Below are positions 29,201-62,561 of a stretch of 64,000 nt of DNA, one piece after another. This DNA is from Setoptus koraiensis. Its lineage: Eukaryota; Animalia; Arthropoda. Every line of letters starts with the position of its first letter. Positions within the stretch are counted from its first letter, which is position 1. The notes below the pieces were generated by a model. That model did no database searches, had not been told where the DNA came from, and saw only the letters and a program-made list of their open reading frames with translations. The translations under genes were made by a program, and so were the position numbers. The stretch spans positions 23,684,001-23,748,000 of the forward strand of contig CM106586.1 of the NCBI GenBank assembly GCA_048013815.1, given 5' to 3'.

Positions 29201-29735
29201 TTCATGCTGATTCCTCTATCTGCTTCCCCTTCCTTATATGTTTCCGTGCTCCTTTCCTTACTTTTTTTTACTTTCCCTTCCATACTTTCCTCTCTTATGA
29301 CCATCCATCGTGATTGTGTTTTATCTCCCTTCTCTCTCTCTTACCCGTACTTTTCCTCTGCCGACGTGTCCCCCCTCTCTTTCCACCTTTTCTTGATGCC
29401 CTGCTCTTTCATTCCCCTCTCTTTTTATGTCTTTTCTTTCTACTTATCCCTTTCCTCCCCCTTCTCTCGTTTCTTTCTTTTCGTTTTATCGCTTCTTTCG
29501 TTCCTTTTCCTCCTTGCCTCTCTCACTTGCTCATTATTTTCTGTCTCTCCGTTCTATTTTTTCCTTTTCCTTCTCTATTCCTTACTTCTCTCTCATTATG
29601 CCCCTTCTCTCTTACTCCCCTCTTTTTTGCTATCCTATTCGCTCTGCTTCCCTTTTTCATCTCTCCTCTTCTGCCCTCTCTACCCCCGCCCTTAGTTTTA
29701 TTACGATTACTATTCTCTCCCCCCTATTCTCCCCT
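26236..29735 (+). repeat. Aperiodic pyrimidine-rich (C/T) low-complexity tract, probably low-quality read sequence
   Basis: Mostly C/T with no stable repeat unit. It lies between the error-laden fold-back arm and an N gap. Confidence 0.75.
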
Positions 29736-30235
29736 NNNNNNNNNNNNNNNNNNNNNNNNNNNNNNNNNNNNNNNNNNNNNNNNNNNNNNNNNNNNNNNNN
29801 NNNNNNNNNNNNNNNNNNNNNNNNNNNNNNNNNNNNNNNNNNNNNNNNNNNNNNNNNNNNNNNNNNNNNNNNNNNNNNNNNNNNNNNNNNNNNNNNNNNN
29901 NNNNNNNNNNNNNNNNNNNNNNNNNNNNNNNNNNNNNNNNNNNNNNNNNNNNNNNNNNNNNNNNNNNNNNNNNNNNNNNNNNNNNNNNNNNNNNNNNNNN
30001 NNNNNNNNNNNNNNNNNNNNNNNNNNNNNNNNNNNNNNNNNNNNNNNNNNNNNNNNNNNNNNNNNNNNNNNNNNNNNNNNNNNNNNNNNNNNNNNNNNNN
30101 NNNNNNNNNNNNNNNNNNNNNNNNNNNNNNNNNNNNNNNNNNNNNNNNNNNNNNNNNNNNNNNNNNNNNNNNNNNNNNNNNNNNNNNNNNNNNNNNNNNN
30201 NNNNNNNNNNNNNNNNNNNNNNNNNNNNNNNNNNN
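29736..30235. other. Assembly gap, 500 N
   Basis: Run of exactly 500 N. The identical size of both gaps suggests a scaffolder placeholder. Confidence 0.99.
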
Positions 30236-33200
30236 GGTGTGTGTGGGGGGGTGGGGTGTGGGGTGGTTGAGGGGGGGTGGGGTGGGGGTGGGGTGTGTGG
30301 GGGGGTGGGGTGGTGGGGGTGGGTGGGGGGTGTGGGGGTGGGTGGTGGGGGGGTGGGTGTGGGGTGGGTGGGGGGGGGTGTGGGTGGGTGTGGTGGGGGG
30401 GTGTGTGGGTTGGGGTGGGGGTGTGTGGTGTGGGGGGGGGTGGTGGGGTGTGGGGTGTGGGGGGTGGGTGGTGGGGGTGGGGTGTGGGGTGGGGGGGTGG
30501 TGGGGTGTGTGGGGTGGGTGTGTGTGGGGTGTGGGGGTGGGGGTGGGGGTGGGGGGGGGGTGGGGGGGGTTGGTGGGTGGGGGTGGTGGGGGTGGGGGGG
30601 GGGTGGGGGGGTGTGTGGGGGGTGGGTGGGTGGTGGTGGGTGGGGGGGGGGTGGGTGGGGGGGTGGGGGGGGGTGGGGGTGTGGGTGGGGGTGTGGGGGG
30701 GGGTGTGGGGGTGTGTGGGGGTGTGGTGGTGTGTGGGGGGGGTGTGGGGTGGTGTGGGTGGGTGTGGTGTGTGGGTGGGGGGTGGGGGGGGTGGGCGGGT
30801 GTCGGGGGGGGGGGGGGTGGGGGGGGGGGTGGGGGTGTGTGTGGGGGTGGGTGTGGGGGGGGGGTGTGGGGGGGTGGGGGGGGGGTGGGTGGGGGGGGTG
30901 TGGGGGGGGGTGGGGGGGTGTGGGGGGGGGGGTGGGTGGGGTGGGGGCGGTGGTGTGGGGGTGGTGTGTGGGGTGGGTGGGGGGGGGGTGGGGTGTGGGG
31001 GGGGTGGGGGGGGGTGGGGGGGGGTGGGGGGGTGGGGGGGGGGTGGTGGGGTGGGGGGGTGGGGGGGTTGGGGGTGGGGTGGGGGTGGGGTTGTTGGGGT
31101 GGTTGGTGGGGGGGGGGTGTGGGTGGGGGGGGGTGGGGTTGGGGGGGGGGTGGTGGTGGGGGGTGGGGGTGTGGGGGGGGGTGGGGTGTGGGGGGTGGGG
31201 GTGTGTGTGGGGGGGGGTGGGGGGGGGGTGGGGGGGGGGGGTGGGGGGGTTGGGGGTGGTGGGGGTTGTGGGGGGGGGTGGGTGGGGTGGGGGTTGGGTG
31301 GGGGGGGTGTGGGGTGGGGGGTGGTGGGGGGGGGGTGGGGGGGGGGGGGGTGTGGGGGGGTGGGTGTGGGGGTGGGGGGGTGGGGGTGGTGGGGGGTGGG
31401 TGGGTGTGTTGGGGGGTGGGGGTGGGGGGTTGGGGGGGTTGGGGGTGGGTGTGGTGTGTGGGTTGGTGTGGGTTGTGTGGGGGGTGTGGTGGGGGTGGGT
31501 GGGTGTGGTGGGGGTGGTGTGTGGTGGGGGGTGGGGGGTGGGGGTGGTGTGGGGGTGTGGGGTGGGGTGGGGGTGGTTGGGGGGGGGTGGGGGGGGGGTG
31601 TGTGGGGGGTGGGTGTGTTGTGGGTGGGGGGGGGGTGGGTGGGGGTGGTGGGGTGGGGGTTGTGGGTGGGGGGGTGGGGGTGTGGGGTGTGGGGGGTGGT
31701 GGGGGGGGGTGTGGGGGGGGGTTGGGGTGGTGGTGGGTGGGTGGTGGGGGGGGGGTTGGTGTGGGGTGGTGGGGGTGGGGGGGGTGGGGGTGGGGGTGTT
31801 GTGTGTGGGTGTTTGTGGGGGGGTGGGGGTGGGGGGTGGTGGGGGGTGGGGGGGGTGGGGGGGGTGGTGGTGGGTGTGGGGGTGGTGGGGGTGTGGTGGG
31901 TGGGGGTGTGGGGGGGGGTGGGTGTGTGGGGTGGGGGGTGGGGGGGTGGGTGGGGGTGGGGGTGTGGGGTGGTGGGGGGTGGGGGGGGGTGGGGGGTTTT
32001 TGGTGGGGTTGGGGGTGGGGGGGTGTTGGGTGGGGGGGTGGGGGGGGTGGGTGGGTGGGGGTGTGGTGGTGGGGGGGGGTGGGGGGGGTGGGGGGTGGTG
32101 TTGGGGTGTTGGTGGGGTGGGTGTGGTGGTTGGGTGGGGGTGGGGGGGGGGTGGGGGGGGGTTGGGGTGGTGTGGTGTGTGGTGGGGGTTGGCGGGGGGG
32201 GGTGTTGGGGGGGGGTGGGGGGGGGGGTGGGGGGGGGTGTGGTGGTGGGTGTGGTGGGGGGGGGGTGGGTTGGGTTGTGTGGGGTGGGGGTGGGTGTGGG
32301 GGGGTGGGTTGGTGTGGGTGGTTGGTGGGTGGGTTGGTGTGGGGTGGTTGGGTGGGTGGGGGGTTGGGTGGGGGGGTGGTGGGTGTGGTGGGGTTGGTGG
32401 TGGTGGGGGGGTTGGGGGGTGGTGGGGTGTTGGTGGTGTGGGTTGGGGGTGGGGGTGTGGGGTGGTTGGGTGTGGGGGTGGGTGTGGTGTGGGGTGGGTG
32501 GTGGGGGGTGGTGGGTTGGTGGGTGGGGTGGGTGTGGTGTGGTGGGGGTGGGGTGGTGGGGGTGTGGGGGGGGGTGGTGGGTTGGTGGTGGGGGTGTGGG
32601 GGGTGGGTGGTTGGGGGTTGGTGGGGGTGGGGGTGGTGGTGGTGTGGGGTGGTGGGTGGTGGGTGGTGGGTGGGGGGGGGTGGGGTTGGTGGGGGGTGTG
32701 GTTGGGGGTGGGGGGTGGTGGTTGGTTGGGGGGGTGGGGTGGGGGGGTTGGGGGGGTGGGGGTTTGTTGGTGGTGGGTTGGTGGGGGGGGGTGGGGTGGT
32801 TGTGGTGGGTTGGGGGTGGGTGTGGGTGGTGGGTGGGGTTGGGTGGGTGTGGTTGGGGGGTGTGGGGTGGGGGGTTGGTGGGGGTGGGGGTTGGTGGTGG
32901 TGGGTGTGGTGGGGGTGGGTGGGGGGTTGGGGTGGGGGTGGTGGTTGGGGGTGGGGGGTTGGGGGGGGTGGGGTGGTGGGGGTTGGGGGTGGTTGGGTGG
33001 TGGGGGTGGTGGGGGGGGTGTGGTGTGGTGGTTGGTGGGGGGTGGGGGTTGGTGGTGGGTGTGGTGGTTGGGGGTTGGTGGGGGGGGGTGGTGGTTGGTG
33101 GGGGGTGGTGGGGGTGGTGGGTGGGGTGGGGTGGGTGGTGGGGTGGTGTTGTGGTTGGTGGGTGGTGGGGGTGGTTGGGTTTGGTGGGGTGGTGTGGTGG

Positions 33201-35753
33201 GGGGGGGTGGGGGTGTGGGTGGTGGTGTGGGGTGGTTGGGGGTGGGGGGGTGGTTGGGGTGGTTGGTGGTGGTTGGTGGTTGGGGTGGGGGGTGGGTGTG
33301 GGTGGTGTTGGTGGTGGGGGTTGGTTGGTTGGTGGTTGGGTGGGTGGTTGGTGGTGGGGTTGGGTTGGGGGGGGTGGGGGTGGTTGGGGGTGGTTGGTTG
33401 GTGGTTGGTTGGGGGTTGGGTGGGGGTGGGTTGGTTGGTGGTGGGGGTGGTTGGGTGTGGTGGGGGTTGGTGTGGTGGGGTGTGGTGGTTGGTGGTTGGT
33501 GGGTTGGTTGGTTGGGGTGTGGTGGGGTTGGTGGTGTGGTTGGTGGTTGGTGGGGGTTGGTTGGGTTGGTTGGTGGTTGGGTGGTGTTGGTGGTGGTGGT
33601 TGGGTGGTTGGTGTGGTTGGTGGTTTGGTTGGGTGGTGGGTGGTTGGTGTGGTGGGTTGGTGGTGGGGGGTGGTTGGGTGGTTGGTGGGGGTGGTGGGTG
33701 GTTGGGTGGTGGTTGGTTGGGTTGGTGGTGGGTGGGGGTGGTTGGTGTGGGGGTGGTTGGTTGGTGGTTGGTGTGGTTGGTTGGTGGTGGTTGGTTGGGT
33801 GGTGTTGGTTGGTTGGTGGTTTGGTTGGTTGGTGGTTGGTTGGTGGTGTTGGTTGGTTGGGTTGGTGGTGGGGGGTTGGTTGGTGGTGGTTGGTTGGTGG
33901 GTGTGGTTGGTTGGGTGGTTGGGTTGGTGGTTGGTGGTTGGTGGTTGGTGGGGTTGGTTGGTGGTTGGTTGGTGTGGTGTGGTTGGTTGGGGGTTGGTGG
34001 TTGGTTGGTGGGTGGTGGTTGGTGGTTGGTGGGTGTGGGTGGGTGTTGGTGGTTGGGTTGGTGGTGGGTTGGTTGGTGGGGTTGGTGGTTGGTTGGTTGG
34101 TTGGTTGGGGGTTGGTTGGTTGGTTGGGTGGTTGGGTGGTGGGTTGGTTGGTTGGTTGGTTGGTGGTGGTTGGTGGGTTGGTTGGTTGGTGGTGTGGTTG
34201 GTGGTTGGTTGGTGGTGGTTGGTTGGTTGTTGGTTGGTTGGGGGGTTGGTTGGTGGTTGGGTTGGTTGGTGTGGTTGGGTGTGGGTGGTTGGTTGGGTTG
34301 GTTGGTTGGTGTGGTTGGTGTGGTTTGGTGTGGTTGGTTGGTGTTGGTTGGTGGTGGGTTGGTGTGGTGGTTGGTTGGTTGGTGGGTTGGTTGGTTGGTG
34401 GTGGTTGGGTGGGTGGTGGTTGGTTGGTTGGTTGGGGGTTGGTGTGGTTGGGTTGGTTGGTGGGGGTTGGTTGGGGGGTTGGTGGGTTGGTTGGTTGGGT
34501 TGGTGTGGTTGGTTGGTTGGGTTGGTGGGTGGTTGGTTTGGTGGTTGGGTGGTGTGGTTGGTTGGTTGTTGGTGGTTGGTTGGGGGGTTGGGTTGGTTGG
34601 TTGGTTGGTGGTTGGTGGTTTGGTTGGTGTGGTTGGTGGTGGTTGGTTGGTGGTTGGTTGGTGGTGGGTTGGTGGTTGGGTTGGTTGGTTGGTTTGGGTG
34701 GTGGTGGGTGTGGTTGGTTGGTTTGGTTTGGTTGGTTGGTGGTTGGTTGGTTGGTTGGGTGGTTGGTTGGTTGGTTGGTTGGTTGGTTGGTTGGTTGGTT
34801 GTTGGTTGGTTGGTTGGTGGTTGGTTGGTTGGTTGGTGGTTGGTTGGTTGGTGGTTGGTTGGTTGGTGGGTTGGTGGTTGGTTGGTTGGGGGTGGTTGGT
34901 TGTTGGGTGGGTTGGTTGGTTTGGTTGTGGGTTGGTTGGTTGGTTGGTGGGTGGTTGGTTGGTTGGGTGGTTGGTTGGGTGGTTGGTTGGTTGGTGGGTT
35001 GGTTGGTTGGGGTTGGTTGGTTGTTGGTTGGTGGTTGGTTGGTTGGTTGGTGGGGGTTGGTTGGTTGGTGGGGTGGTTGGTTGGTTGTTGGTTGGTGGTG
35101 TGGTTGGGTGGTTTGTTGGTTGGTTGGTTGGTTGGTTGGTTTGTTGGTTGGTTGGTTGGTTGGTTGGTTGGTTGGTTGGTTGGTGGTTGGTTGGCTTGGT
35201 TGGTTGGTTGGTTGGTTGGTTGGTTTTTGGTTTGGGGTTGTTTGTGTTGTTTTGTGGGTTGTGTGGTTTTGTTTTTTGGGGGGTGTTGGTTTGTGTTTTT
35301 TGTTTTGGTGTTTTTGTTGTTTGTTTGTTTTGTTGTTTTGGGTTTTTTTTTGTTTGTTTGGGGTTGGTGTTTGTGTTGTGGGGTGTGGGTGTTTTTTGTT
35401 GTTTTTGTGTTGTTTTGGGGGTTGTTTTTGTTGTGTTTTGGGTGGGTGTTGGTGTTTTTTTTGGGGTGTGTTTTTTGGGTTGTTTTTTGTTGTTTTTTTG
35501 GTGTTGGGTTTTTTTTGTTGGTTTTTTGTTTTGTGTTGTTGTTTTTTGGTTTTTTGTTTTTTTTTGTTGTGTGTGTGTTGTTTGTTGTTTTTTTTGTGTT
35601 GTTTTTGGGTTTTTTTTTGTTTTTGTTTTTTTGTTTTTGGTTTTTTTTTTTGTGTTTTTTTTTTTTTTGGGTTTTTTTTTTGGGTTTTTTGTTTTTTTTT
35701 TTTATTTTTTTTTTGGTTTTTTTTTTTGTTTTTTTTTTTTTTTCTCTATTTTG

Positions 35754-35787
<34 letters not shown>

Positions 35788-36110
35788 TTTTTTTTTTTTT
35801 TTTTTATTTTATTATTTGGTTTTTTTTTTGGTTTTTTTTTTTTTTTTGTTTTTTTGTTTTTTGTTATTCTGTTTTGTTTTTTTTTTTTTTTTTTGTTGGT
35901 GGTGTGGTTTTTTTTTTTTTATTTTTTTTTTTTTGTTTTTTTTTTTGGTTGTTTTTTTTTTTTGTTTTTTTTTTGTTTTTTGTTTTTTTTTTTTTGTTTT
36001 TTTTTTTTTTTTTATTTTTTTAATTATTTTGTTTTTTATTTATTTTTTTTTTTTTTATTAAAAATTTTTTTTTTTTTTTTTTTTTTAATTTTTTTTTTTT
36101 TTTTTTTTTT
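30236..36110 (+). repeat. G/T-only low-complexity tract drifting from G-rich to (GGTT)n-like to T-rich, probably artefact
   Basis: Almost no A or C over about 5.8 kb, continuous compositional drift, adjacent to a gap. Confidence 0.8.
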
Positions 36111-36233
36111 TCAAATTATTATAAAATCTTTTTGCCATATTACCATCGAAAACCAATTTAGTTAGCAAATGACATGTCCCATCCATAGCGAAACCTACAA
36201 AATCAAGTTTACATCTTACAGATCTAACCACAA

Positions 36234-37857
36234 TCAAATCATCAGAAGGCACTTATCTCTGGTATTGTACATCAAAGAAACGATTCTATTGTCGGAACAA
36301 GCCTTTTGCATCAGCTCCGATATTCGCCTTTGTAATAAATTCCTTGTCATTTTTGTCATTGTCGGCAAAGATCTGGTTAGATTATCACTAGTTTGATCGT
36401 TGCTGTAGATATCACTATCGTGGTTTCGAAGTTCCATCATGTCAAATGCATCACATATATTGTCAAAATGATCCATATTCGTTTTAGAATTTTCCAATTC
36501 GTTCGGGGGAACTGGACGGTTGAGTTCAAACTTCTCCGTTTGAGACACATTACGGTTTAGATCTACTGGTAGATTCGAGTCGACGTTAGTTGAGGTGGCT
36601 TTGGGTAGGTCCTGATCGTGCCTCTCTCGGAGTCTCAAGCAGTTACGAGCTTCGTTGACATGAATGGAAAAAAAGCGAGGCCTCTCTATATACTGGTTCA
36701 ACCTAGTCTGGGTTATTGATAGCCTAAATAAGAAAAAGTTAATTAGATTTAACTGGGGCATTGAGGGAGGACTCAGAATCTCTAGAAGACCGGTTGAATT
36801 GCCAGTTTATACTTACCATCTATGAGAGTCATATAACATTCTTAGTTGATGATTCTCTAGGTGAAATTTGGATTTCAACTCCTCGTTGTTTACTACTTGC
36901 TCGAGTTTGTTAAAATCTTCCTCAGAAATGTGATAAAATCTGATTTTTTCCAAAAGTATATCTAACACTTGGTCGAAATCTTCTCCTACACCTGTAACTT
37001 GTCCCTTATTGTCCTCAACATCAATATTATTCTTATAACTAGTTGTGGCGTGTAGAGTATTCCAAACAACATTAGGCTTGCGCTCATCAATCATTTTTTG
37101 CTGTCTATGTTCGGCCCAATCTATCAGAGCTTTCAAAGCCTCTCCATCGCTTGCTTGCAAGTAATCCGACTGGAGTATCTCGTATAGCAAATCTGGCTCC
37201 AAATCATAGAATATAGGAAAACAAGTTATAGTACTGAATTCGTCACACATAAATCGAATAAGTTGTCTTCGAACCCATAAAGACCCCTTCGGTGATTTCA
37301 ACCATTCCAGGAGTTCCTGCATATGTCCTGTCGAACGAATATTTTTCTAGGGATAAAGATTCTACTATGAGATTCTCACAACTTTGAATAAGATTATTCA
37401 ATTCCAAAAAACTAGCTATGCTGTGTAGCTCTAATAAATCCGACAAAGAGCACAAGGAATGAACAGTTGTACAATTGTTGTTGGTGTCACGAGATTGCCC
37501 TGCAGTGAATTTCTGTTTTACTATTTCGTCAAGTCGGTACGTTTCCTGGTTGCATTGACAGGCACATGTATCCAGGACTTCAAGAGACAAGTTATCTAGG
37601 TAGATGGAGTGAAGGATAACACGAGCAAATCGCCTGGGTATGATAGATTCATCAAAAGTCAATTTCATTCTATGAATAGAATCCGATTGTTGAAGTTGTT
37701 TGGTTGCTCGTTCATATCCTTTTGTTTATTCAGTATTATTTTCTTCAAAAAAGAGGAGCGGGATGCCAGCAATGCTTGATGGCATGAATATTCGGTTTGA
37801 CTTGAGGATGGATTGCAGTTGGAATTGAAGCAAGTCCGATATGATTTTCTTCCGTTG
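36234..37857 (-). pseudogene. BTBD7: 5'-truncated BTBD7 fragment (partial leftmost unit) with indel errors
   Basis: Same sequence as 46913-48674 but with single-base indels that split the ORF. The errors increase toward the junk tract. Confidence 0.7.
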
Positions 37858-38271
37858 TAGTGGAAGGCTTGGATATAATTGATTGGTCGGATTGGTTGCC
37901 AGTTGATCATCATCAACCATCTGATTGCCATCGATGACGAGTTTTCGAGGTGTATTGTAGAGAAGTGGATTGCTGAAAAACAGTGCAAATATTACAAAAC
38001 ATGATAAGATGAGCATCAAATAGAATTTAATAAATCTAGGCCATCTATGAGACCAGAAAATCCTCTTGAGTAATATAAGTAGATCTTGAAAGTTTGACGG
38101 TACATTTAATTCTTTGTTCATACCAAAAAACCAATTGAGTCGGTGATGGTAGAAATGCTGATTTTGGTGCCTAAATGCGGTGTTTTTTGAAGAAGATGCC
38201 AGCGGTGTTGTAGGTGACGAAGATAAATGCTGCTGAGTATCAGTTAGATCTAATAGAACGTTGTGACTCAT
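37726..38271 (-). pseudogene. 5' fragment of an unidentified type II membrane protein gene, fused out of frame to BTBD7 sequence (copy 1)
   Basis: Cytosolic N-terminus, one TM segment (FIKFYLMLILSCFVIFALFFS) and a stem. After ...SLPLQ the ORF reads BTBD7 DNA in another frame and stops. Confidence 0.55.
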
Positions 38272-39617
38272 GTTTAACTGGTGTAATTGTAGTGATTGAG
38301 ATATAATAACAATATTGTAGAAGCCTCAAGAGCTCCATTTCTTGATTAGGAACAGCTACGAGGCAAGGTTCTTGGAAACAAAAGTCAAAATGGCCTCGTG
38401 AACGATCTCCCGCAACAGTCAGACTAAAGGGTTGATATTTCGAGGCATAGTAACTAACATCTTTCTATAGTGCGTCCATCGCTGTTCACTGTGATACTGA
38501 AACCAATATGGAGTGATCATAAGTATAGAGATGAATGCAGAATAGAGATTGTGCTTTGTACTAGTATTATTGCTAGTAACCGTGAATGACAGATCACCCC
38601 TTGAATTGTGCAATCTGAAAATTTTTCTTCTGACAGAGTGCTACGGACATGTGAGTGTTGGAGCGCCTTGCATATTTTTTTCTGCACATGCTCATGTTGT
38701 ATCACTATCAGCGATGTAAACAAGGATAGCAGCCTCTTGAGATGGTTTTGTATGTTCACTATGCTGTGAGAATCTTGAGAATCTTGAGAATCATTGAAAT
38801 CAATTTTCGTTGCGCAATATCCAGCTTGAGATTCAATCATGTAGAAAAATCTTCCTCGCACCCACAACGCTACCAACGATAATTGCAGAGAAGTGACATG
38901 TATACGCAAGTTAGATAGTGCCCCACCCGCATTATAAACTTCGATATTCCGTATCCCCAACTCGTGATGAACTTAAACGTCAGTTTCAAAGCGATGTTCA
39001 GAAAGCGATGTGCGAAAAAGACGTCTTTATACAAATTGTACATTAGAGCATGTGATGATAATGTTTGACGTTCAATCATCGAACTATATTGCGTATTCAA
39101 TTGTATGACTCATCATGTGCCCTCATGACCATTTTCGTACACGTGTGATGCTCTTCATTCTACAATACGTAGAGAGACTATTGAGTCCAGTGCCATTTTG
39201 ATATTATTGAGCACACCGCCCTTTAGAAAACCATTCAGGGCACTCACATTTTATATCACATTATCTCTCATTAGTATTTATTGTGAAGCCTATTAGAATG
39301 ATAAACGATTTGTGACCCGGCCATCATATAACTTCTCATGCAACACTCATGATAAGACCTGCATCTCACAATCTCTGCGAACTTTGTGAGTTCAACTCCT
39401 AGGCTGTTCGAATTTGGCGCTTTGGTAAAGTGAAAGTCTAGAGAGAAAGGCGCCTGGCTACACAATTCATTGTTAAACAATTAAATTGGGCTTAATGTTG
39501 TTATTGTTGTTGTTTTGATCAGTTTATATTATAACCAACATCTTACGGGTACTCTCAAAACTTAAAAAAATCCGCTTAATTATGCTGTCGAGAATTTATT
39601 GCTGAGGATAATTCATC

Positions 39618-40840
39618 ATGTCACCTTATCATGGTAGATTCAATTATGCCATTTGCAGGAGAATAAGCAGGCCCACAGCTGATTCTATCAGTAGCCAAGA
39701 AAGTGGAAACGGTACTGGTGATGCACTCCTGGATGATGACAATAACGCTAATCAATTCCAAGCGATCGATAATATGAGCGACAAAGAATTCAATGAGGCA
39801 CAGAATGAACTTCAAAATTATATCGCTACCTTACGAATGCTAAATATTGATGTTATAGAATTGTGTCCAGATGATGCTCTTAAGTATGAATCTATTTTCA
39901 TTGGAGACACTGCCGTCATTATAAACGGTCTCATCTTACTATGCAGACCTATTAATAGGCTTAAGGAGGCAAGTTATCATATGTGTCTTGAAAATCTAAA
40001 TTCTCTCTTTGTTAACTAGATCTAATTCATGACACTGAATCTATCGACACCATTACAAATATACAGATCGAAGACATTAAGCAAATCAAGAGAGAGCTCG
40101 ATTTACCAATCATCGAGGTTAAAGATGAAAGAGCCTATCTGAATGGGGGTGACGTATTATGGACGGGACGAGAAATATTTGTTGGTTTATCCAGTGAAAC
40201 CAATGAAGCTGGCGCTCGTGCAGTTGCAGGTAAACAAAATGTCGTGCATCATAAGATCAACCATTTCATTCTTTTATAAGAACTGAAATATTCATTCAAT
40301 TTTATCTATCATCCTCTAATCTAACCATGTAGCTGCATTTCCCGAGTATCCAGTGACACCGGTGCAAGTTCCACGGAAGAACAATTTACGTCTTAAATCT
40401 CACATCACCATGGCTGGTCCCGATATTTTGTGTGTCAGTAAATCTCAAGAGACACAGGAAATGCTTAGGGTAAGTACTATCGAACAATTAACTGATATTT
40501 ATATTTCACTAACTCCTCTACAATAAATTGAAGCTAATTGCTCATCTATGTGGTTGATTATATAAAATCTCAACATAATCAGAGAATGGAGAGAGAGGCA
40601 TCTCATCAGTACAAGCTTATCACTGTGGACGATGACCAAGCAGCAAATGTGCAATATATCAATGGTACCTTACTGCATAGGAACGATCTGCCTAGAAGCT
40701 TCGCAATATTTCAAGACAGAATTGATTATTCGAGAGTGCCTGTAAAAATATCAGCCTTGACAAAGAACTATCCTCACCAGGGACTAAACTCATTGTGCCT
40801 GTTAATAAGGAAGTCAAATCGCATTCAAAGTATAGTTTAG
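39618..40840 (+). CDS. DDAH: Dimethylarginine dimethylaminohydrolase (DDAH)-family protein, copy 1; exons 39618-39968, 40067-40229, 40333-40469, 40583-40840; 302 aa
   Basis: The spliced product has IFIGDTAVI, LNGGDVLWTGREIFVGLS...TNEAGARAVA, LKSHITMAGPDILCV, VDDDQAANV and GLNSLCLLI. Exon lengths sum to 909 nt, which is in frame. Confidence 0.85.
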
Positions 40841-41153
40841 TGTTCATGGATTCTAGAATAATAATATCATCGACGCATATGAGTATATTAAGTGCTAGAA
40901 AACTATTATTAGAGACAAATAAAAAAAGGGTAGCTTTTTCTATCCTTGCACCTGGTTCTAGAGGATCCCGCGAGTGCGGCGCACGGAATCGTTTCTTTTT
41001 TCTAAGCAGTCGCAGCTCTCTTACGGCATATTCGAAGACCATCCACTGACTTTTGCAGCTTGTAATTAGATTAGACAATTCGCGATTGAACGACTTCTGG
41101 TGAAGAAGATGATGGTTGCGCAAAGTTGATTGTCTTAGTTCATAGTTTTAATA

Positions 41154-42915
41154 TTAATAATTAAGAGTACATTTTTTAAGTCTTTTTGAGCATTTTACCA
41201 TTCGAGAAACCTTTTTTAGTTTGCAAGATGAATTGTGCAATTCAATTGCGTATAAGTCTGAGATTCCAAGTTCTCTTACAGATCTTAACTCAATCAATTT
41301 CATCAGATGGCACTTATCTCGTTTTGTCATCAAAGAAACGATTCTATTGTCGGAACAAGCCTTTTGCATCAGCTCCGATATTCGCCTTTGTAATAAATTC
41401 CTTGTCATTTTTGTCATTGTCGGCAAAGATCTGGTTAGATTATCACTAGTTTGATCGTTGCTGTAGATATCACTATCGTGGTTTCGAAGTTCCATCATGT
41501 CAAATGCATCACATATATTGTCAAAATGATCCATATTCGTTTTAGAATTTTCCAATTCGTTCGGGGGAACTGGACGGTTGAGTTCAAACTTCTCCGTTTG
41601 AGACACATTACGGTTTAGATCTACTGGTAGATTCGAGTCGACGTTAGTTGAGGTGGCTTTGGGTAGGTCCTGATCGTGCCTCTCTCGGAGTCTCAAGCAG
41701 TTACGAGCTTCGTTGACATGAATGGAAAAAAAGCGAGGCCTCTCTATATACTGGTTCAACCTAGTCTGGGTTATTGATAGCCTAAATAAGAAAAAGTTAA
41801 TTAGATTTAACTGGGGCATTGAGGGAGGACTCAGAATCTCTAGAAGACCGGTTGAATTGCCAGTTTATACTTACCATCTATGAGAGTCATATAACATTCT
41901 TAGTTGATGATTCTCTAGGTGAAATTTGGATTTCAACTCCTCGTTGTTTACTACTTGCTCGAGTTTGTTAAAATCTTCCTCAGAAATGTGATAAAATCTG
42001 ATTTTTTCCAAAAGTATATCTAACACTTGGTCGAAATCTTCTCCTACACCTGTAACTTGTCCCTTATTGTCCTCAACATCAATATTATTCTTATAACTAG
42101 TTGTGGCGTGTAGAGTATTCCAAACAACATTAGGCTTGCGCTCATCAATCATTTTTTGCTGTCTATGTTCGGCCCAATCTATCAGAGCTTTCAAAGCCTC
42201 TCCATCGCTTGCTTGCAAGTAATCCGACTGGAGTATCTCGTATAGCAAATCTGGCTCCAAATCATAGAATATAGGAAAACAAGTTATAGTACTGAATTCG
42301 TCACACATAAATCGAATAAGTTGTCTTCGAACCCATAAAGACCCCTTCGGTGATTTCAACCATTCCAGGAGTTCCTGCATATGTCCTGTCGAACGAATAT
42401 TTTCTAGGGATAAAGATTCTACTATGAGATTCTCACAACTTTGAATAAGATTATTCAATTCCAAAAAACTAGCTATGCTGTGTAGCTCTAATAAATCCGA
42501 CAAAGAGCACAAGGAATGAACAGTTGTACAATTGTTGTTGGTGTCACGAGATTGCCTGCAGTGAATTTCTGTTTTACTATTTTCGTCAAGTCGGTACGTT
42601 TCCTGGTTGCATTGACAGGCACATGTATCCAGGACTTCAAGAGACAAGTTATCTAGGTAGATGGAGTGAAGGATAACACGAGCAAATCGCCTGGGTATGA
42701 TAGATTCATCAAAAGTCAATTTCATTCTATGAATAGAATCCGATTTGTTGAAGTTGTTTGGTTGCTCGTTCATATCCTTTTGTTTATTCAGTATTATTTT
42801 CTTCAAAAAAGAGGAGCGGGATGCCAGCAATGCTTGATGGCATGAATATTCGGTTTGACTTGAGGATGGATTGCAGTTGGAATTGAAGCAAGTCCGATAT
42901 GATTTTCTTCCGTTG
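41154..42915 (-). pseudogene. BTBD7: 5'-truncated BTBD7 fragment in unit 1 (3' part of exon 1 plus exon 2)
   Basis: Matches 46913-48674 but lacks the first BTB domain and the native start. Confidence 0.75.
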
Positions 42916-43329
42916 TAGTGGAAGGCTTGGATATAATTGATTGGTCGGATTGGTTGCCAGTTGATCATCATCAACCATCTGATTGCCATCGATGACGAGT
43001 TTTCGAGGTGTATTGTAGAGAAGTGGATTGCTGAAAAACAGTGCAAATATTACAAAACATGATAAGATGAGCATCAAATAGAATTTAATAAATCTAGGCC
43101 ATCTATGAGACCAGAAAATCCTCTTGAGTAATATAAGTAGATCTTGAAAGTTTGACGGTACATTTAATTCTTTGTTCATACCAAAAAACCAATTGAGTCG
43201 GTGATGGTAGAAATGCTGATTTTGGTGCCTAAATGCGGTGTTTTTTGAAGAAGATGCCAGCGGTGTTGTAGGTGACGAAGATAAATGCTGCTGAGTATCA
43301 GTTAAATCTAATAGAACGTTGTGACTCAT
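42784..43329 (-). pseudogene. 5' fragment of an unidentified type II membrane protein gene fused to BTBD7 sequence (copy 2)
   Basis: Same 181-aa ORF as 37726-38271, with one synonymous difference. Confidence 0.55.
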
Positions 43330-44523
43330 GTTTAACTGGTGTAATTGTAGTGATTGAGATATAATAACAATATTGTAGAAGCCTCAAGAGCTCCATTTCT
43401 TGATTAGGAACAGCTACGAGGCAAGGTTCTTGGAAACAAAAGTCAAAATGGCCTCGTGAACGATCTCCCGCAACAGTCAGACTAAAGGGTTGATATTTCG
43501 AGGCATAGTAACTAACATCTTTCTATAGTGCGTCCATCGCTGTTCACTGTGATACTGAAACCAATATGGAGTGATCATAAGTATAGAGATGAATGCAGAA
43601 TAGAGATTGTGCTTTGTACTAGTATTATTGCTAGTAACCGTGAATGACAGATCACCCCTTGAATTGTGCAATCTGAAAATTTTTCTTCTGACAGAGTGCT
43701 ACGGACATGTGAGTGTTGGAGCGCCTTGCATATTTTTTTCTGCACATGCTCATGTTGTATCACTATCAGCGATGTAAACAAGGATAGCAGCCTCTTGAGA
43801 TGGTTTTGTATGTTCACTATGCTGTGAGAATCTTGAGAATCTTGAGAATCATTGAAATCAATTTTCGTTGCGCAATATCCAGCTTGAGATTCAATCATGT
43901 AGAAAAATCTTCCTCGCACCCACAACGCTACCAACGATAATTGCAGAGAAGTGACATGTATACGCAAGTTAGATAGTGCCCCACCCGCATTATAAACTTC
44001 GATATTCCGTATCCCCAACTCGTGATGAACTTAAACGTCAGTTTCAAAGCGATGTTCAGAAAGCGATGTGCGAAAAAGACGTCTTTATACAAATTGTACA
44101 TTAGAGCATGTGATGATAATGTTTGACGTTCAATCATCGAACTATATTGCGTATTCAATTGTATGACTCATCATGTGCCCTCATGACCATTTTCGTACAC
44201 GTGTGATGCTCTTCATTCTACAATACGTAGAGAGACTATTGAGTCCAGTGCCATTTTGATATTATTGAGCACACCGCCCTTTAGAAAACCATTCAGGGCA
44301 CTCACATTTTATATCACATTATCTCTCATTAGTATTTATTGTGAAGCCTATTAGAATGATAAACGATTTGTGACCCGGCCATCATATAACTTCTCATGCA
44401 ACACTCATGATAAGACCTGCATCTCACAATCTCTGCGAACTTTGTGAGTTCAACTCCTAGGCTGTTCGAATTTGGCGCTTTGGTAAAGTGAAAGTCTAGA
44501 GAGAAAGGCGCCTGGCTACACAA

Positions 44524-45224
44524 GGATGTGTTGCATTTTGGGTCGATTTTGAAAATTTTTGCTGTGGGTATCTATCGTTGGAGGTATGATAGAGCACCCC
44601 GAGTGGCGCCCATCGGGCCGGCCCGCGCACTGGAACCACCTTGCGGTCGGGCGTTACCGCGGTTTTAGTATTTTTTTTTTGTTTGGGGCCCCACTTCGCA
44701 TAGAAAGATAGGATCGGCGGAGATGTGACTATGCTCATTGTGTAGAGCGACTCCCAACCGACAAAATGAGCGAAAAAAATGTTGAAAAAACAACGGAGGT
44801 CGGTGTGAAAAACCGCAAGACCCGAGCCCCCTCCCCTGACCGCGCATAGGAGATGTGCAGATTTCGTCCGCTCATTGGCTGCTCTATTTGCATTTCTCCT
44901 ATGCGCGGTCAGGGGAGGGGGCTCGGGTCTTGCGGTTTTTCACACCGACCTCCGTTGTTTTTTCAACATTTTTTTCGCTCATTTTGTCGGTTGGGAGTCG
45001 CTCTACACAATGAGCATAGTCACATCTCCGCCGATCCTATCTTTCTATGCGAAGTGGGGCCCCAAACAAAAAAAAAATACTAAAACCGCGGTAACGCCCG
45101 ACCGCAAGGTGGTTCCAGTGCGCGGGCCGGCCCGATGGGCGCCACTCGGGGTGCTCTATCATACCTCCAACGATAGATACCCACAGCAAAAATTTTCAAA
45201 ATCGACCCAAAATGCAACACATCC
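44524..45224. mobile_element. 701-bp palindromic non-autonomous element (330-bp perfect TIRs plus 41-bp spacer), no TSD; Spy/PHIS-like MITE candidate
   Basis: Arms 44524-44853 and 44895-45224 are exact reverse complements, with ends GGATGTG...CACATCC. Filled site: CTACACAA[element]TTCATTG. Empty site in unit 1 (about 39458-39472): CTACACAATTCATTG. The element is visibly more GC-rich than its flanks. Confidence 0.85.
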
Positions 45225-45376
45225 TTCATTGTTAAACAATTAAATTGGGCTTAATGTTGTTATTGTTGTTGTTTTGATCAGTTTATATTATAACCAACAT
45301 CTTACGGGTACTCTCAAAACTTAAAAAAATCCGCTTAATTATGCTGTCGAGAATTTATTGCTGAGGATAATTCATC

Positions 45377-46599
45377 ATGTCACCTTATCATGGTAGATTC
45401 AATTATGCCATTTGCAGGAGAATAAGCAGGCCCACAGCTGATTCTATCAGTAGCCAAGGAAGTGGAAACGGTACTGGTGATGCACTCCTGGATGATGACA
45501 ATAACGCTAATCAATTCCAAGCGATCGATAATATGAGCGACAAAGAATTCAATGAGGCACAGAATGAACTTCAAAATTATATCGCTACCTTACGAATGCT
45601 AAATATTGATGTTATAGAATTGTGTCCAGATGATGCTCTTAAGTATGAATCTATTTTCATTGGAGACACTGCCGTCATTATAAACGGTCTCATCTTACTA
45701 TGCAGACCTATTAATAGGCTTAAGGAGGCAAGTTATCATATGTGTCTTGAAAATCTAAATTCTCTCTTTGTTAACTAGATCTAATTCATGACACTGAATC
45801 TATCGACACCATTACAAATATACAGATCGAAGACATTAAGCAAATCAAGAGAGAGCTCGATTTACCAATCATCGAGGTTAAAGATGAAAGAGCCTATCTG
45901 AATGGGGGTGACGTATTATGGACGGGACGAGAAATATTTGTTGGTTTATCCAGTGAAACCAATGAAGCTGGCGCTCGTGCAGTTGCAGGTAAACAAAATG
46001 TCGTGCATCATAAGATCAACCATTTCATTCTTTTATAAGAACTGAAATATTCATTCAATTTTATCTATCATCCTCTAATCTAACCATGTAGCTGCATTTC
46101 CCGAGTATCCAGTGACTCCGGTGCAAGTTCCACGGAAGAACAATTTACGTCTTAAATCTCACATCACCATGGCTGGTCCCGATATTTTGTGTGTCAGTAA
46201 ATCTCAAGAGACACAGGAAATGCTTAGGGTAAGTACTATCGAACAATTAACTGATATTTATATTTCACTAACTCCTCTATAATAAATTGAAGCTAATTGC
46301 TCATCTATGTGGTTGATTATATAAAATCTCAACATAATCAGAGAATGGAGAGAGAGGCATCTCATCAGTACAAGCTTATCACTGTGGACGATGACCAAGC
46401 AGCAAATGTGCAATATATCAATGGTACCTTACTGCATAGGAACGATCTGCCTAGAAGCTTCGCAATATTTCAAGACAGAATTGATTATTCGAGAGTGCCT
46501 GTAAAAATATCAGCCTTGACAAAGAACTATCCTCACCAGGGACTAAACTCATTGTGCCTGTTAATAAGGAAGTCAAATCGCATTCAAAGTATAGTTTAG
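45377..46599 (+). CDS. DDAH: DDAH-family protein, copy 2; exons 45377-45727, 45826-45988, 46092-46228, 46342-46599
   Basis: Same structure as copy 1. One non-synonymous change seen (SQES to SQGS at 45459). Confidence 0.85.
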
Positions 46600-46912
46600 T
46601 GTTCATGGATTCTAGAATAATAATATCATCGACGCATATGAGTATATTAAGTGCTAGAAAACTATTATTAGAGACAAATAAAAAAAGGGTAGCTTTTTCT
46701 ATCCTTGCACCTGGTTCTAGAGGATCCCGCGAGTGCGGCGCACGGAATCGTTTCTTTTTTCTAAGCAGTCGCAGCTCTCTTACGGCATATTCGAAGACCA
46801 TCCACTGACTTTTGCAGCTTGTAATTAGATTAGACAATTCGCGATTGAACGACTTCTGGTGAAGAAGATGATGGTTGCGCAAAGTTGATTGTCTTAGTTC
46901 ATAGTTTTAATA

Positions 46913-49429
46913 TTAATAATTAAGAGTACATTTTTTAAGTCTTTTTGAGCATTTTACCATTCGAGAAACCTTTTTTAGTTTGCAAGATGAATTGTGCAAT
47001 TCAATTGCGTATAAGTCTGAGATTCCAAGTTCTCTTACAGATCTTAACTCAATCAATTTCATCAGATGGCACTTATCTCGTTTTGTCATCAAAGAAACGA
47101 TTCTATTGTCGGAACAAGCCTTTTGCATCAGCTCCGATATTCGCCTTTGTAATAAATTCCTTGTCATTTTTGTCATTGTCGGCAAAGATCTGGTTAGATT
47201 ATCACTAGTTTGATCGTTGCTGTAGATATCACTATCGTGGTTTCGAAGTTCCATCATGTCAAATGCATCACATATATTGTCAAAATGATCCATATTCGTT
47301 TTAGAATTTTCCAATTCGTTCGGGGGAACTGGACGGTTGAGTTCAAACTTCTCCGTTTGAGACACATTACGGTTTAGATCTACTGGTAGATTCGAGTCGA
47401 CGTTAGTTGAGGTGGCTTTGGGTAGGTCCTGATCGTGCCTCTCTCGGAGTCTCAAGCAGTTACGAGCTTCGTTGACATGAATGGAAAAAAAGCGAGGCCT
47501 CTCTATATACTGGTTCAACCTAGTCTGGGTTATTGATAGCCTAAATAAGAAAAAGTTAATTAGATTTAACTGGGGCATTGAGGGAGGACTCAGAATCTCT
47601 AGAAGACCGGTTGAATTGCCAGTTTATACTTACCATCTATGAGAGTCATATAACATTCTTAGTTGATGATTCTCTAGGTGAAATTTGGATTTCAACTCCT
47701 CGTTGTTTACTACTTGCTCGAGTTTGTTAAAATCTTCCTCAGAAATGTGATAAAATCTGATTTTTTCCAAAAGTATATCTAACACTTGGTCGAAATCTTC
47801 TCCTACACCTGTAACTTGTCCCTTATTGTCCTCAACATCAATATTATTCTTATAACTAGTTGTGGCGTGTAGAGTATTCCAAACAACATTAGGCTTGCGC
47901 TCATCAATCATTTTTTGCTGTCTATGTTCGGCCCAATCTATCAGAGCTTTCAAAGCCTCTCCATCGCTTGCTTGCAAGTAATCCGACTGGAGTATCTCGT
48001 ATAGCAAATCTGGCTCCAAATCATAGAATATAGGAAAACAAGTTATAGTACTGAATTCGTCACACATAAATCGAATAAGTTGTCTTCGAACCCATAAAGA
48101 CCCCTTCGGTGATTTCAACCATTCCAGGAGTTCCTGCATATGTCCTGTCGAACGAATATTTTCTAGGGATAAAGATTCTACTATGAGATTCTCACAACTT
48201 TGAATAAGATTATTCAATTCCAAAAAACTAGCTATGCTGTGTAGCTCTAATAAATCCGACAAAGAGCACAAGGAATGAACAGTTGTACAATTGTTGTTGG
48301 TGTCACGAGATTGCCTGCAGTGAATTTCTGTTTTACTATTTTCGTCAAGTCGGTACGTTTCCTGGTTGCATTGACAGGCACATGTATCCAGGACTTCAAG
48401 AGACAAGTTATCTAGGTAGATGGAGTGAAGGATAACACGAGCAAATCGCCTGGGTATGATAGATTCATCAAAAGTCAATTTCATTCTATGAATAGAATCC
48501 GATTTGTTGAAGTTGTTTGGTTGCTCGTTCATATCCTTTTGTTTATTCAGTATTATTTTCTTCAAAAAAGAGGAGCGGGATGCCAGCAATGCTTGATGGC
48601 ATGAATATTCGGTTTGACTTGAGGATGGATTGCAGTTGGAATTGAAGCAAGTCCGATATGATTTTCTTCCGTTGGCTTTGCTAGATTGTTTGAAAACCAA
48701 GCATGCGTCTGCGTAGATTCCAGTATCTAGCAAATGTTTCATGTCACTGTCCAGATTAGAATTTCCTATGGTTGCAGCTATCTCCCGAGGTAGATATTCG
48801 GCTAAGCTATCAACTGATGGCACACCCGAGTATAAGTGTTTCAGAAAATTATCAAAATGATAAGTACTCATTTCTGAAGTATGATGAAATTGTACCTCCA
48901 CTGTGCTACCAAACTTGTTAATCTTGCTCAACAATTCTCGGAAGTATGAACTTCGGACACACAATATTGGTTTGTGCGCTGGAAAGAGCTTGCCTTGATA
49001 ACATAAAGTTACATCTGCACAATGTTGCGTCAGATAGAGTGATAACAAATCTTCACTATATGAATTTACCTGTGGCCTGGCCATGTCTGCCTCACGTTTA
49101 TATTCAAATAGATATTCAAGGATATCATAAGATTCGATGAGATTTTTGAGATCACTGGTTCTGATGGTAGACAAGAAATTACGGATAGCATTGATTTGTG
49201 CAGCTTCTCTATTTGCTGATCTCTTTTTCACGCCCAAAATTGTGGATATTCTCCTTAGAGTTGATGGAACATAGATGTTTCGGCGTTGTTTTTTGATTTT
49301 ATGATTATCACTAACTTGCTGAGATACTGAATAATCAGTAAAACTGGAACACGGGATTGAATTTGGATCAAGTCTACAATAGTCTGACGCCTGCTGATCA
49401 CCATTATTGAGACTCATGGAAGTACCCAT
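46913..49429 (-). CDS. BTBD7: BTB/POZ domain-containing protein 7, 2 exons (49429-47634, 47540-46913), 807 aa
   Basis: MG- start, ARPQ...DLLSLY...CADVTLCYQGKLFPAHKPIL (BTB1), a second BTB and a BACK-like region. A GTAAGT...TTTAG intron (47633-47541) links to the 221-aa ORF, which carries YIERPRFFSIHVNEA (BTBD7 YVRPRLFSPYVEEA-like). Confidence 0.85.
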
Positions 49430-56635: not shown

Positions 56636-57410
56636 GTCAACGAAGAAAATTTAGAACTATATCCAATTGTTATCCGTATAAAATTATTGTTGAATGTACA
56701 AGTTCGTACTAGTTCGTCGTGAGTGATAATTAATGTTTTTACAGTAATCAATTAGCGGTTTGTCTAGTTTACCGTAAAACATTTCATGAATGCACAACAC
56801 GTGTATATTTTTGGTTTTCGTTGGCGGCACATCAGCTGACATTGATGATTCTTTTCCATCGCGCGTTTCCCGGGCTCTGACGGCTCACATCTTCCCATGT
56901 TTATTGAAAAGAATAATGAGAAAAGGAGCTCATATTATCTCAGTTTTACTTGCCAAGTAGGAATCAATAGATCGAAGTGAGCGAAGTTACAACCGGAAGA
57001 GTGCGCTCACAAAAAGGAATCAATTTTTCCGAAGTGGTCGATCTTCATGATGTCTAGAGAGCGAAAAAGTATCCAAATGATCGAAGATCTAAATAGAGAT
57101 TTCTCCCTCCCTTCTGCTTGTCGTCATCATCAGACATTTGTCACATAGTAGAGTGTGGATTCAGATGTCAAATGATGCTCGTAATTGCTATCACGCCTCT
57201 TGTTCTCAGCTTGTTCTCTATGGTTGACTACTGAGGCTTTGCAGCGCCATAGTTTCTCGTCGCTCATCATATCAGCGTCCAACAGTCATAAAACATCATA
57301 AAATCTCAGTTCTTGTCACTATTACTGAAGCATTTCGTTATACACTTGCTACGCTCTATACTAATACACACACACATACAATTTGCAAGAATTCGTGTCA
57401 AGCTCAATTT

Positions 57411-57574
57411 TGTTTGGGGTTAGGTAGATTAATGTGTGAGAGAGCTACTTCTTTTTTTTTTTTTTTGTGGTGTGTGTGTTTTTTGGGTTTGTTTTTTTTG
57501 GGGGGGTGTGTTTTTTGTGTTTTTTTGTGTTTTTGGGGGTGTGTGTTGTGTGGTGTGTTGTTTTTTTTTTTGTG

Positions 57575-57605
<31 letters not shown>

Positions 57606-60600
57606 TTTTTTATGGGGTGGGGGGGGGGTGGGGGGGGTGGGGGGGGGGGGGGGTTGGTGGGTGTGTGGTGTGTGTGTGTGGGGTGTGGTGAGTGTTGGTG
57701 TGGGTGGTGTTGTGTGGGTTGGGTTGTGTGTGGGTGTTGTGTTGTGGTGTGTGGGTGGTGTGGTGTGTGGTGTGGTGTGTGTGGGGTGGTGTTTGGTGTG
57801 GGTGGGTGTTGTGTGGTGGGGTGTTGGGTTGGGGGTTGGTGTGTGTGGTGGGTGTGTGGTGGGGTGGTTTGTGGGGGGGGGGTGTGTGTGTGTGGGTGTG
57901 TGGTGGGTGTGGGTGGTGGGGGGTGGGTGTGTGGTTGGGGTGGTTGGGGGTGGGGTTTGTTGGTGTTTTGTGGTGGGGTTGGGGTGTGTTTGTGTGTGTG
58001 TGTGTGTGTTTGTTTTTGTTTGTTTGTGTGTTGTGGGGTGTGTTTGTTGTGTGTGGTTGGGTGTGTTGGTGTGTTTGTGTGTTGTGGGGTGTGTGTGGGT
58101 GTGGGGGTGTGTTTGTGTGGGTTTTGTTGTTGTTTGGGGTTTTGTGGGTGTGTGTGTGGGTTTTGGTTTTTTGTGGTGTGGGGTTTTTGTTTTTGTTGTG
58201 TGGTGGTGTGTGTTTTTGTGGGTTTGTGTTGTTTGTTTTTGTGGGTGTGGGTGTGGTTTTGGTTTTTTGGTTGTTTTGTTTGTTTTTTTTGGTGTTTTGT
58301 TTTGTTTGTTTTTGTTTTTGTTTGTGTTGGTTTTTTTTGTTTTGTGTTTGTTGTTTGGGTTTGTGTGTGTGTTTTTTGTTTTGTGTTGGTTTTTGTTTTG
58401 TTTTGTTGTTGTTTTTGTGTTTTTTTGGTTGTGTTTTGTGTGTTTTTGTTGTTTTTTTTTTTTTTTTTTGTTTTTGTTTTTTTTGTTGGTGGGTGTTGTT
58501 TTTGTGGTTGTTTTTTTTGTTTTTTTTTTTTTTTGTTTGTTTGTTTTTTGTTTTTTTTGGTGTTTGTTTTTTTGGTGTTTTTTGTTTTTTTTGTTTGTTT
58601 TTTTTTGTTTTTGTTTTTGTTTTTGTTGTTGGTTTTTTGTTGTGGTTTTGTTTTTTGTTTTTTTGTTTTGGTTTTTTTGTTTTTTGTTTGGTTTGTTTTT
58701 TTGTTTTTTTTTGTTTGTTGTTTGTTTTTGTTGTTTGTGTTGTTTGTTTTGTTTGGTGGTTTTTGTTGTTTGTGGTTTTGTTTTGTTGTTTTTTTTGTTT
58801 TTTTGTGTTTTTGTTTTTGTTTTTGTGTGTTTGTTTTGGTTGGTGTTTTTGTTTTTGTGTTGTTTTTGTGTTGTTTTTGTTTGTTTGTTTGTTTTGTTGT
58901 TTTTGGGGTGGTTGGTTTTTGTTTGGTTGTTTTTTGTTTTTTTTGTTTTTTTGTTTTGTTTTTTGTTTTTGTGTTTGGTTTGTTTTTTTTTGGGTTTTTT
59001 TTGTGTTTTTGTTTGTTTGTTTGGTTTTGTGTTTTGGTGTGTTTTTTGTTTGTTTTTGTGGTTTGTTTTTTGTTTTTTTTGTGTTTGTTTGTTGTTTTTG
59101 TTTTGTTTGGTTGTGTGTGTTTTTTTGTTTGTTTTTTTTGTTTTGTTGTTGGTTGTGTTTGTGGTTTTTGTTTGTTTGTTTTGTGTTGTTTGTTTTGTTT
59201 TTTGTTTTTGTTTGTTTGTTGGTTTTTTTGTTTGTATTTTTTTTTGTGTTGGTTTTTTTGTTTGTGTTTTTTGTTTTTTTTTTTTTGTTTTTTGTTTTTG
59301 TGTTTGTTTTTTTTGGTTTGTTTTTTTGGTTGTTTTGTTTTTGTTTTGTTTTGTTGTTTTTTTTTGTTGTTTTGTTGTTTTTTGTTTTGGTTTTGTTTTG
59401 TTGTGTTTGTTTTTTGGTTTTGTTGTTGTTTGTTTGTTTGTTTGTTTGTTTTTTGGTTGGGTTTTTTTTGTTTTGTGTTTTGTTTTTTTTGGTTTGTTGT
59501 TTGTTTTTTGTTTGTTTTGTTTTTTGTTTGTGTTGTTTGTTTGTGTTGTTTTTGGTTTTTTTTTGTTGTTTGGTTTTTTGTTGTGTTTTTGTTGTTGTTT
59601 TGTTTGTGTGGTTTGTTTGTTTTTGTTTGGTTGTTGTTTGTTTTTTGTTTTGTGTTTTTTTGTTTTGTTTGTTTGTTTTTTTGTTGTTTTGTTTTTTGTG
59701 TGTTTTTGTTTGTTTTTTTTTTGTTTGTTTGTGTTTGTTTTTTTGTTTTTTTTTTTTTTTGTTTTTTTTTTCTTTTTTGTTTTGTTGTTTTGTTTTTTTT
59801 TTTTTTGTTTTGTTGTTTTTTTTTTTTGTTTTTTTTTGTGTTTTTTTTTGTTTTTTTGTTTTTTTTGTTTTTTTTGTTTTTGTTTTTTTTGTTTTTGTGT
59901 GTTGTGTGTTTTTTGTTTTTTTTGTGTTTTTGTTTGTTGTTTTTTGTTGTTTTTTGTTGTTTGTTTGTTTTGGTTTTTTGTTTTTGGTTTGTTTGTTGTT
60001 GTTTTTGTTTTGGTTTTTTTTTGTTTGTTTGTTGTGTTTGTTGTGTTTTGTTGTGTTTGTTTTGTTTTTTTTTTTTTGTTTTTTTTTTGTTGTTTTTGTT
60101 TGGTTGGTTTTTTTTTTGTTTGTGTTTTTGTGTTTTGTTTTTTGTTGTTGTTTTTTTTTGTTGTTTGTTTTTTGTTGTTTTTTTTTGTTTTGTTTTTTGT
60201 TTTTTTTGTTGTTTGTTTTTTTTTGTTTTTTGTTTTTTGTGGTTTGTTTTTTGTTTTGGTTTTTTTTTGTTTCATTTGTTTTTTGTGTTTTTTTGTTTTT
60301 TGTGTTTTTTTGTTTTTTTTTTTTGTTTTTTTGTTGTGTTGTTTTTTTTGTGTGTTTTGTTGGTTGGTTTTTTTGTTTTTTGTTTTTTTGTTTTTTGTTT
60401 TTGTGTTTTTTTTTTTTTGTGTTTTGTTTGTGTTTTTTGTTGTGTTTGTTTTTTTTTTTTTTTTTTGTTTTTTTTTTTTTTGTTTTGTTTGTTTTTTTTT
60501 TTTTTGTTTTGTTTTTTGTGTTGTTTGTTTGTTGTTTTTGTTTTTGTTTTGGTTTTTTTGTTGTTTTTTTGTTTTGTTGTGTTTTTTGTTTTGGTTTGTT

Positions 60601-62121: not shown

Positions 62122-62561
62122 AGATGCACCAATCAATCTTCAGTTGTCAAGAGGACTTTACAACAAATTTTGATATTGCCATGCGATGAACAGCAAGTGA
62201 GTGGCATGCGAAGCCGACGAAATATTTTACAATTGTGTCCAACTTATGAAACGACTAGATTATCTAAAAGTTACTATGTACTACCGCAGTGGTCTTTTTT
62301 GTTAGACCTTTATAGAATTTAAATTCATCTTATATCACCAAAGCAAACTTCTTTGATGCAGGATTGACTTGAAGTCTGATTAAGGAGCTTTAGTCGTTAA
62401 TATACCTTAAACGATTTCGACAAACTGCTAGATGATGGAAAAAACATGTATTGTATTTGGAGCAGTGGATATACATACTTTGTGTATGATGAAAATGGTG
62501 ATGATAGTATGAGAAAAGGTGAATAAAATTAGATTCTAAAATAACAACTGTCTTTGAAAAA

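Follow-up and report, generated by a model that had tools for sequence, protein, structure and literature searches.

A DDAH-like gene that was duplicated recently has a 701-bp, almost fully palindromic piece of DNA upstream of one of its copies, and this piece is missing from the matching position at the other copy. The question raised by this locus is how such a piece of DNA came to be inserted without changing its target, and whether a described group of mobile elements accounts for it. All coordinates given below are those of the window (the whole 64-kb stretch of DNA that was analyzed), unless an element position or another contig is named.

Structure and content of the element

Comparison of window positions 44524–45224 with their own reverse complement yielded a palindrome with mismatches confined to element positions 331–371. 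The original prediction, which described two exact 330-bp arms, a 41-bp spacer and GG...CC ends, was thereby confirmed. The left arm (left terminal inverted repeat, 44524–44853, 330 bp) begins GGATGTGTTGCA and is the exact reverse complement, at 330/330 positions, of the right arm (right terminal inverted repeat, 44895–45224, 330 bp), which ends TGCAACACATCC. Between them lies an asymmetric center of 41 bp (44854–44894), the outer 9 bp of which pair at 6/9 positions around a 23-nt loop. In an inverted-repeat search, which took in the flanking AA/TT (44522–45226), the arms lengthened to 341 nt at 99% with the same 23-nt loop. Folded as single-stranded DNA, the element forms one rod of −476 kcal/mol (z = −79.5 relative to shuffles).

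The termini are GG..CC and the start reads GGATGTGT. The terminal hexamer GATGTG has two further occurrences in direct orientation in the arm, at element positions 199 and 329. Such recurrence arose by chance in 30 of 5,000 shuffles, and recurrence of any of six terminal hexamers in 69 of 2,000. Subterminal repeats that are bound by transposases have a recurring pattern of this type, and the GATGTG occurrences are suggestive of predicted transposase binding-site repeats. Repeats within the arm otherwise amount to two short motif pairs of 8–9 bp and three weaker pairs, with nothing else found. The start of the center (44849–44877) repeats arm motifs from 44719–44740 (GGAGATGTG ... GCTCATTG), in direct orientation and with different spacing. 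The center also contains ATTGG (an inverted CCAAT) and an octamer-like motif, ATTTGCAT.

The element has a G+C content of 51.5%, as compared to 38% in the surrounding unit, and shows no similarity to the rest of the 64-kb window beyond low-complexity matches between T-runs. As the inserted DNA is unrelated to its flanks and to the window and differs in composition, its source lies elsewhere and it did not arise as a local fold-back, in agreement with what had been proposed.

The accompanying claim that the element holds no internal ORF of note needs qualification, as each arm carries an outward-reading open frame of 116 codons (the right-hand one at 44875–45222, mostly within the right arm); it stands insofar as no test recognized a protein there. 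The 116-codon frame had no significant Pfam match and no match in a word-index search of 5.8 billion proteins, and its atlas score of 0.83 is a low recognition at the level of chance. The sole HMMER match among 1.84 billion representatives, an ankyrin protein with 22 repeats, was considered spurious because a match of 30% over 37 amino acids was repeated, inflating the E-value. We therefore rejected a captured coding fragment as the source of the arm, since no protein test recognizes the frame. An RNA gene was also rejected: Rfam gave only sub-threshold matches to miRNA hairpins at the center, which are expected of any palindrome. Mitochondrial or ribosomal DNA is argued against by the G+C content and the lack of Rfam matches.

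The original prediction had also raised the possibility that the element matches vector or contaminant DNA, and this was not borne out by matches to plasmid, phage, viral, microbial or metagenome sequences. Specifically, blastn of the element against plasmids and phages returned no match, and a terminal 24-mer and an internal 26-mer were absent from viral, metagenome and bacterial/archaeal contigs. Protein collections (which do not include this species) held no exact counterpart of the ORFs of the window or of four ORFs of the element.

Insertion site, age and neighboring gene

The paralogous empty site, CTACACAA|TTCATTG, is located at 39458–39472 in the adjacent tandem unit, with the uninterrupted point at 39465|39466; the complete 15-mer, CTACACAATTCATTG, occurs only once in the window, at these positions. 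The filled site reads CTACACAA, then the 701 bp, then TTCATTG. Its left target half (..CAA|, 44522–44523) is host DNA that is present once at the empty site and adds 2 nt to the palindrome, and its right target half (|TTC.., 45225–45226) is likewise host DNA by comparison with the empty site. With the 701 bp removed, filled and empty sites were identical at 120/120 positions over ±60 bp. The offset between copies is 5058 on the left (44523 − 39465) and 5759 on the right (45225 − 39466), a difference of exactly 701. These values are those of the original prediction, which had placed an empty site in the same window with no base duplicated or deleted. The boundaries of the element are not shiftable, because its first base is G and its last is C, next to a flanking A and T. 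Direct repeats of any length are absent from its borders, so there is no target-site duplication (TSD), and the tally for the target is exactly +701 bp with no base duplicated or lost. The 701 bp are thus confirmed as a clean, TSD-less insertion of unrelated palindromic DNA, as known here from the assembled sequence alone.

Nine bases that reach from the left side over the insertion point (CTACACAAT, 39458–39466) recur in the right arm of the element (45004–45012), and a mirror-image 7-mer, TCATTGT, is found in the left arm. The 9-nt match, which is estimated to be an approximately 6% chance event, might hint at homology-guided targeting or repair.

Both the filled and the empty site are supplied by a young tandem duplication of ~5.06 kb (36270–48674), identified by self-BLAST. 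The units as aligned are 36124–41177, 41178–46936 (with the element) and 46937–48674 (partial). Units 1 and 2 show 8 differences in ~4.9 kb to the right of a degenerate left edge, with 4 of the 8 being 1-bp indels in a truncated BTB copy. As there are only 8 such differences and the arms are identical at 330/330 positions, the event is recent. Judged from this comparison of the copies, which differ by ~0.16%, the duplication is very recent and the insertion later still. The duplication carries the DDAH-like gene, a 221-aa ORF without a family and a BTB/BACK (BTBD7-like) gene of which it includes the 3′ part; the sole complete BTBD7 copy is the last one (47633–49429).

Related-species sequence was used to assign polarity. 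The closest relative in the protein collection has 83–84% protein identity (Logan run SRR33593474). Contig L002 of the related species can be aligned over a stretch that begins 62 bp to the left of the site and runs on through the downstream gene, and its order matches that of the empty version, which makes the element a gain in unit 2. Precise loss from unit 1 was considered and rejected, as there are no flanking direct repeats that would allow slippage, and the insertion is absent from the related species. Footprint-free excision from unit 1 by a transposase, if true, would imply mobility equally. No tandem duplication and no inverted repeat of at least 40 nt was found in the related-species contigs L001 and L002 (7–9 kb). 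In the related species (L002 5402–7455 and L001), an RMD1-3 family gene precedes the DDAH-like gene, and BTBD7 is on a separate contig.

The first ORF of the second DDAH-like copy lies on the plus strand at 45377–45775 (unit-1 copy at 39618–40019), with the start codon 153 bp beyond the right edge of the element. The DDAH-like identity comes from weak PDB matches, 8/8 of which are DDAH1 and colinear (best E = 0.04); Pfam gave no match for this ORF. Alignment with L002 also revealed an upstream block that is conserved with the related species (44461–44516, plus strand; coordinates transferred from 39403–39458 in unit 1 using the 5058 offset), which stops 7 bp left of the insertion point. This block is presumed to be a regulatory or 5′ region of the DDAH-like gene, which would place the element in the promoter or 5′ region of copy 2. 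The insertion parts the conserved block from the start codon of this copy, and read-through transcripts would likely fold into a perfect 330-bp hairpin. The locus is a natural before-and-after pair, with a hairpin upstream of one DDAH-like copy and not the other, and this filled/empty pair would allow a direct test of the effect of the insertion on expression and on small-RNA production.

Comparison with Spy and other mobile elements

To our knowledge, Spy is the one described group of eukaryotic transposons with terminal inverted repeats (TIRs) that makes no TSD. Han et al. (2014, PMC4122938) define this group by its TIRs, a single DDE transposase, the absence of a TSD, an insertion site between AAA and TTT, and a terminal GGANNNNG motif. 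This motif is the only similarity between Spy families and is described as "relatively well conserved" (PMC4122938). TIR lengths are 9 to 1,474 bp in PMC4122938, and the published range as a whole is 5 to 1,474 bp (PMC4122938; PMC11304231). Arachnids are among the hosts with long Spy TIRs, and the species in which Spy was detected include Metaseiulus occidentalis and Tetranychus urticae (PMC4122938). A 2024 survey gives TIRs of 342/342 bp for Spy in the mite Dermatophagoides farinae and of 580/580 bp in the mite Galendromus occidentalis (PMC11304231 supplement). The active element cgSpy has 467-bp TIRs; in human cells it produced 8,810 integrations without TSDs, ~60% at the consensus and ~40% off it, which favored promoters and 5′ ends (PMC11304231).

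Like these elements, the 701-bp element is bounded by TIRs and has no TSD, with its target unchanged, and this was shown in the same way, by way of a paralogous empty site. Its TIRs (330 bp exact, or 341 bp at 99%) are long and fall inside the published Spy range. Compared with the Spy motif GGANNNNG, the start of the element (GGATGTGT) has the GGA, and position 8 is T rather than G. At this single site, CAA|TTC has the same central AA|TT as the Spy target AAA|TTT, as had been pointed out originally, while the outer bases (C and C) differ. Promoter-proximal integration is a further likeness, and non-autonomous derivatives are common in Spy. A difference is that the arms make up 94% of the length of the element, with only 41 bp between them. 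The comparison is drawn from one copy, and no PHIS or Spy transposase was found in the 64-kb window. The choice of Spy as the right known comparison is upheld by the absence of a TSD, the GGA ends and the long TIRs of mite Spy elements (PMC4122938, PMC11304231).

Considering these features together, the element is probably a very young DNA transposon that moves by cut and paste, is non-autonomous and belongs to the Spy type, within the PHIS superfamily (PIF/Harbinger, ISL2EU and Spy). It is little more than two long terminal inverted repeats, and its structure, its exact insertion without a TSD, its recency, its GGA ends and its AA|TT site are direct observations. We infer that a transposase and other members of the family are located elsewhere in the genome. 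No second copy of the element was found in the 64-kb window or in the two related-species contigs, and a scan of the window, L001 and L002 for inverted repeats bounded by AA|GGA..TCC|TT returned only the 701-bp element. The mechanism that we propose would have a Spy-type DDE transposase, encoded at another locus of this genome, bind the GGA-initiated ends and excise the element by flush cuts. The element would then be joined, at the midpoint of AATT, into a target cut that is likewise flush (non-staggered), 153 bp upstream of one recently duplicated DDAH-like copy. That no target base was duplicated or lost would follow from the cut being flush, a chemistry that is carried over from published work on Spy.

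The original prediction had left the choice between a very young Spy-like element and a new TSD-less family. Its recency was supported, with the related species lacking the insertion, and a new family is not needed to explain the data. Indeed, there is no new category here, as the published Spy elements of mites already include TSD-less ones with long TIRs. If the element is of the Spy type, it shows very recent activity of this TSD-less group in a mite genome that is small and compact. Moreover, as the event postdates a duplication with copies ~0.16% apart, an active Spy transposase may be present in that case. The locus would then be relevant to studies of flush-cut integration and to Spy as a gene-transfer tool.

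Other known systems show partial likenesses. Long-TIR elements of the Foldback, P and MuDR kind have 7–10-bp TSDs and arms that are built of subrepeats. Foldback (FB) and other long-TIR elements (Drosophila FB, Galileo and the root-knot nematode Mutator/Foldback Tm1, PMC3169594) are similar to the 701-bp element in that they consist mostly of long inverted arms, are non-coding and form hairpins. The 701-bp element differs from Foldback, P and MuDR elements in having no duplication of any length, and from Foldback also in that its arms lack subrepeats beyond a few short motif pairs. Helitrons have TC..CTRR ends, no terminal inverted repeats and one 3′ hairpin and insert between A and T; in Helentrons the insertion site is T|T, and the TIRs are short and asymmetric. 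The element shares with Helitrons the lack of a TSD and the A|T site; however, it is a symmetric, full palindrome with GG..CC ends.

Alternative origins and other window features

It is unlikely that the insertion has a non-transposon origin, in which end-joining repair of a double-strand break upstream of the gene captured a stray fragment that was palindromized by fold-back (snap-back) synthesis. The element would then be one product of a general tendency of the genome to inverted duplications, and the same window does contain another palindrome, of more than 5 kb. Arm identity of 330/330 is what copying of one arm from the other during the event would produce, and a palindrome that formed upon insertion or shortly beforehand would account equally well for perfect identity over 330 bp beside a center that pairs at 6/9. 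Even so, the two bases at either edge of the center are mismatched, so that a simple 3′-end snap-back primer would be unpaired there. The insert is inverted and self-complementary, as are snap-back and SD-MMEJ products, and the 2-nt extension of the palindrome into the flanks (AA/TT) is a possible microhomology at the joint. However, documented snap-back and SD-MMEJ insertions span a few to tens of bases and have the immediate flank as their template (PMC5728401, PMC2943611), whereas this one is 701 bp unrelated to its flanks. Its target is perfectly kept, and retention of every target base on both sides is uncommon for end joining. The 9-nt match between the target and the right arm would also fit repair, but its estimated chance of ~6% weakens this point. 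The lack of a second copy in the window and in the two related-species contigs likewise fits a single capture event. On the other hand, the GGA ends and the AATT site would have to be coincidences, and GGA alone has a probability of about 1 in 64.

Another, possibly undescribed, TSD-less mobile element, for example one using single-stranded hairpin, rolling-circle/HUH-type or unknown chemistry, is a slim prospect; the genome would then hold several unrelated inserted fold-backs of this kind. Classical Helitrons also insert between A and T without a TSD, and the whole element folds as one hairpin, but its ends are GG..CC rather than the TC..CTRR of Helitrons and are symmetric, with no 3′ subterminal hairpin apart from the whole. 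The matches to the Spy motif and to the Spy target are both partial, which leaves room for such an element, although Spy already covers GGA ends, an AATT center and long TIRs. Taken more broadly, we give little credence to an undescribed, Spy-transposase-independent route for TSD-less insertion of hairpin DNA, whether a new class of fold-back that moves as a hairpin or a repair pathway that captures and palindromizes stray DNA. Under such a route, the 701-bp element would be its freshest product in the genome.

Finally, an artefact of the assembly or the library, in which a long read that is chimeric or palindromic, or DNA from a contaminant, entered the consensus without being present in the animal, would fit the G+C content far from the local value and the single copy within the window and the two related-species contigs, but it is highly improbable, as both junctions are base-perfect with flanks that continue without loss, fold-back read artefacts duplicate local sequence instead, nothing matched among plasmids/vectors, phages or viral, microbial or metagenome contigs, and the 41-nt center is presumably unlike a PacBio hairpin adapter.

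Two other features of the window were observed. First, the palindrome of more than 5 kb spans 21000–26090, with its center near 23495, and is 86% complementary overall with many gaps. Its inner arms (22758–23327 and 23663–24233) are 98–100% complementary and its outer parts are more diverged, and an ELO (GNS1/SUR4) ORF lies inside it at 21992–23071. Second, very long, strand-biased simple-repeat blocks occupy 26000–36100 and 57400–62200 and are nearly all G/T on the plus strand. The GC skew is near +1 over most of both blocks, with the exception of 26–30 kb, a stretch of negative skew that is C/T-rich on the plus strand. The left end of the tandem duplication adjoins one of the simple-repeat blocks.
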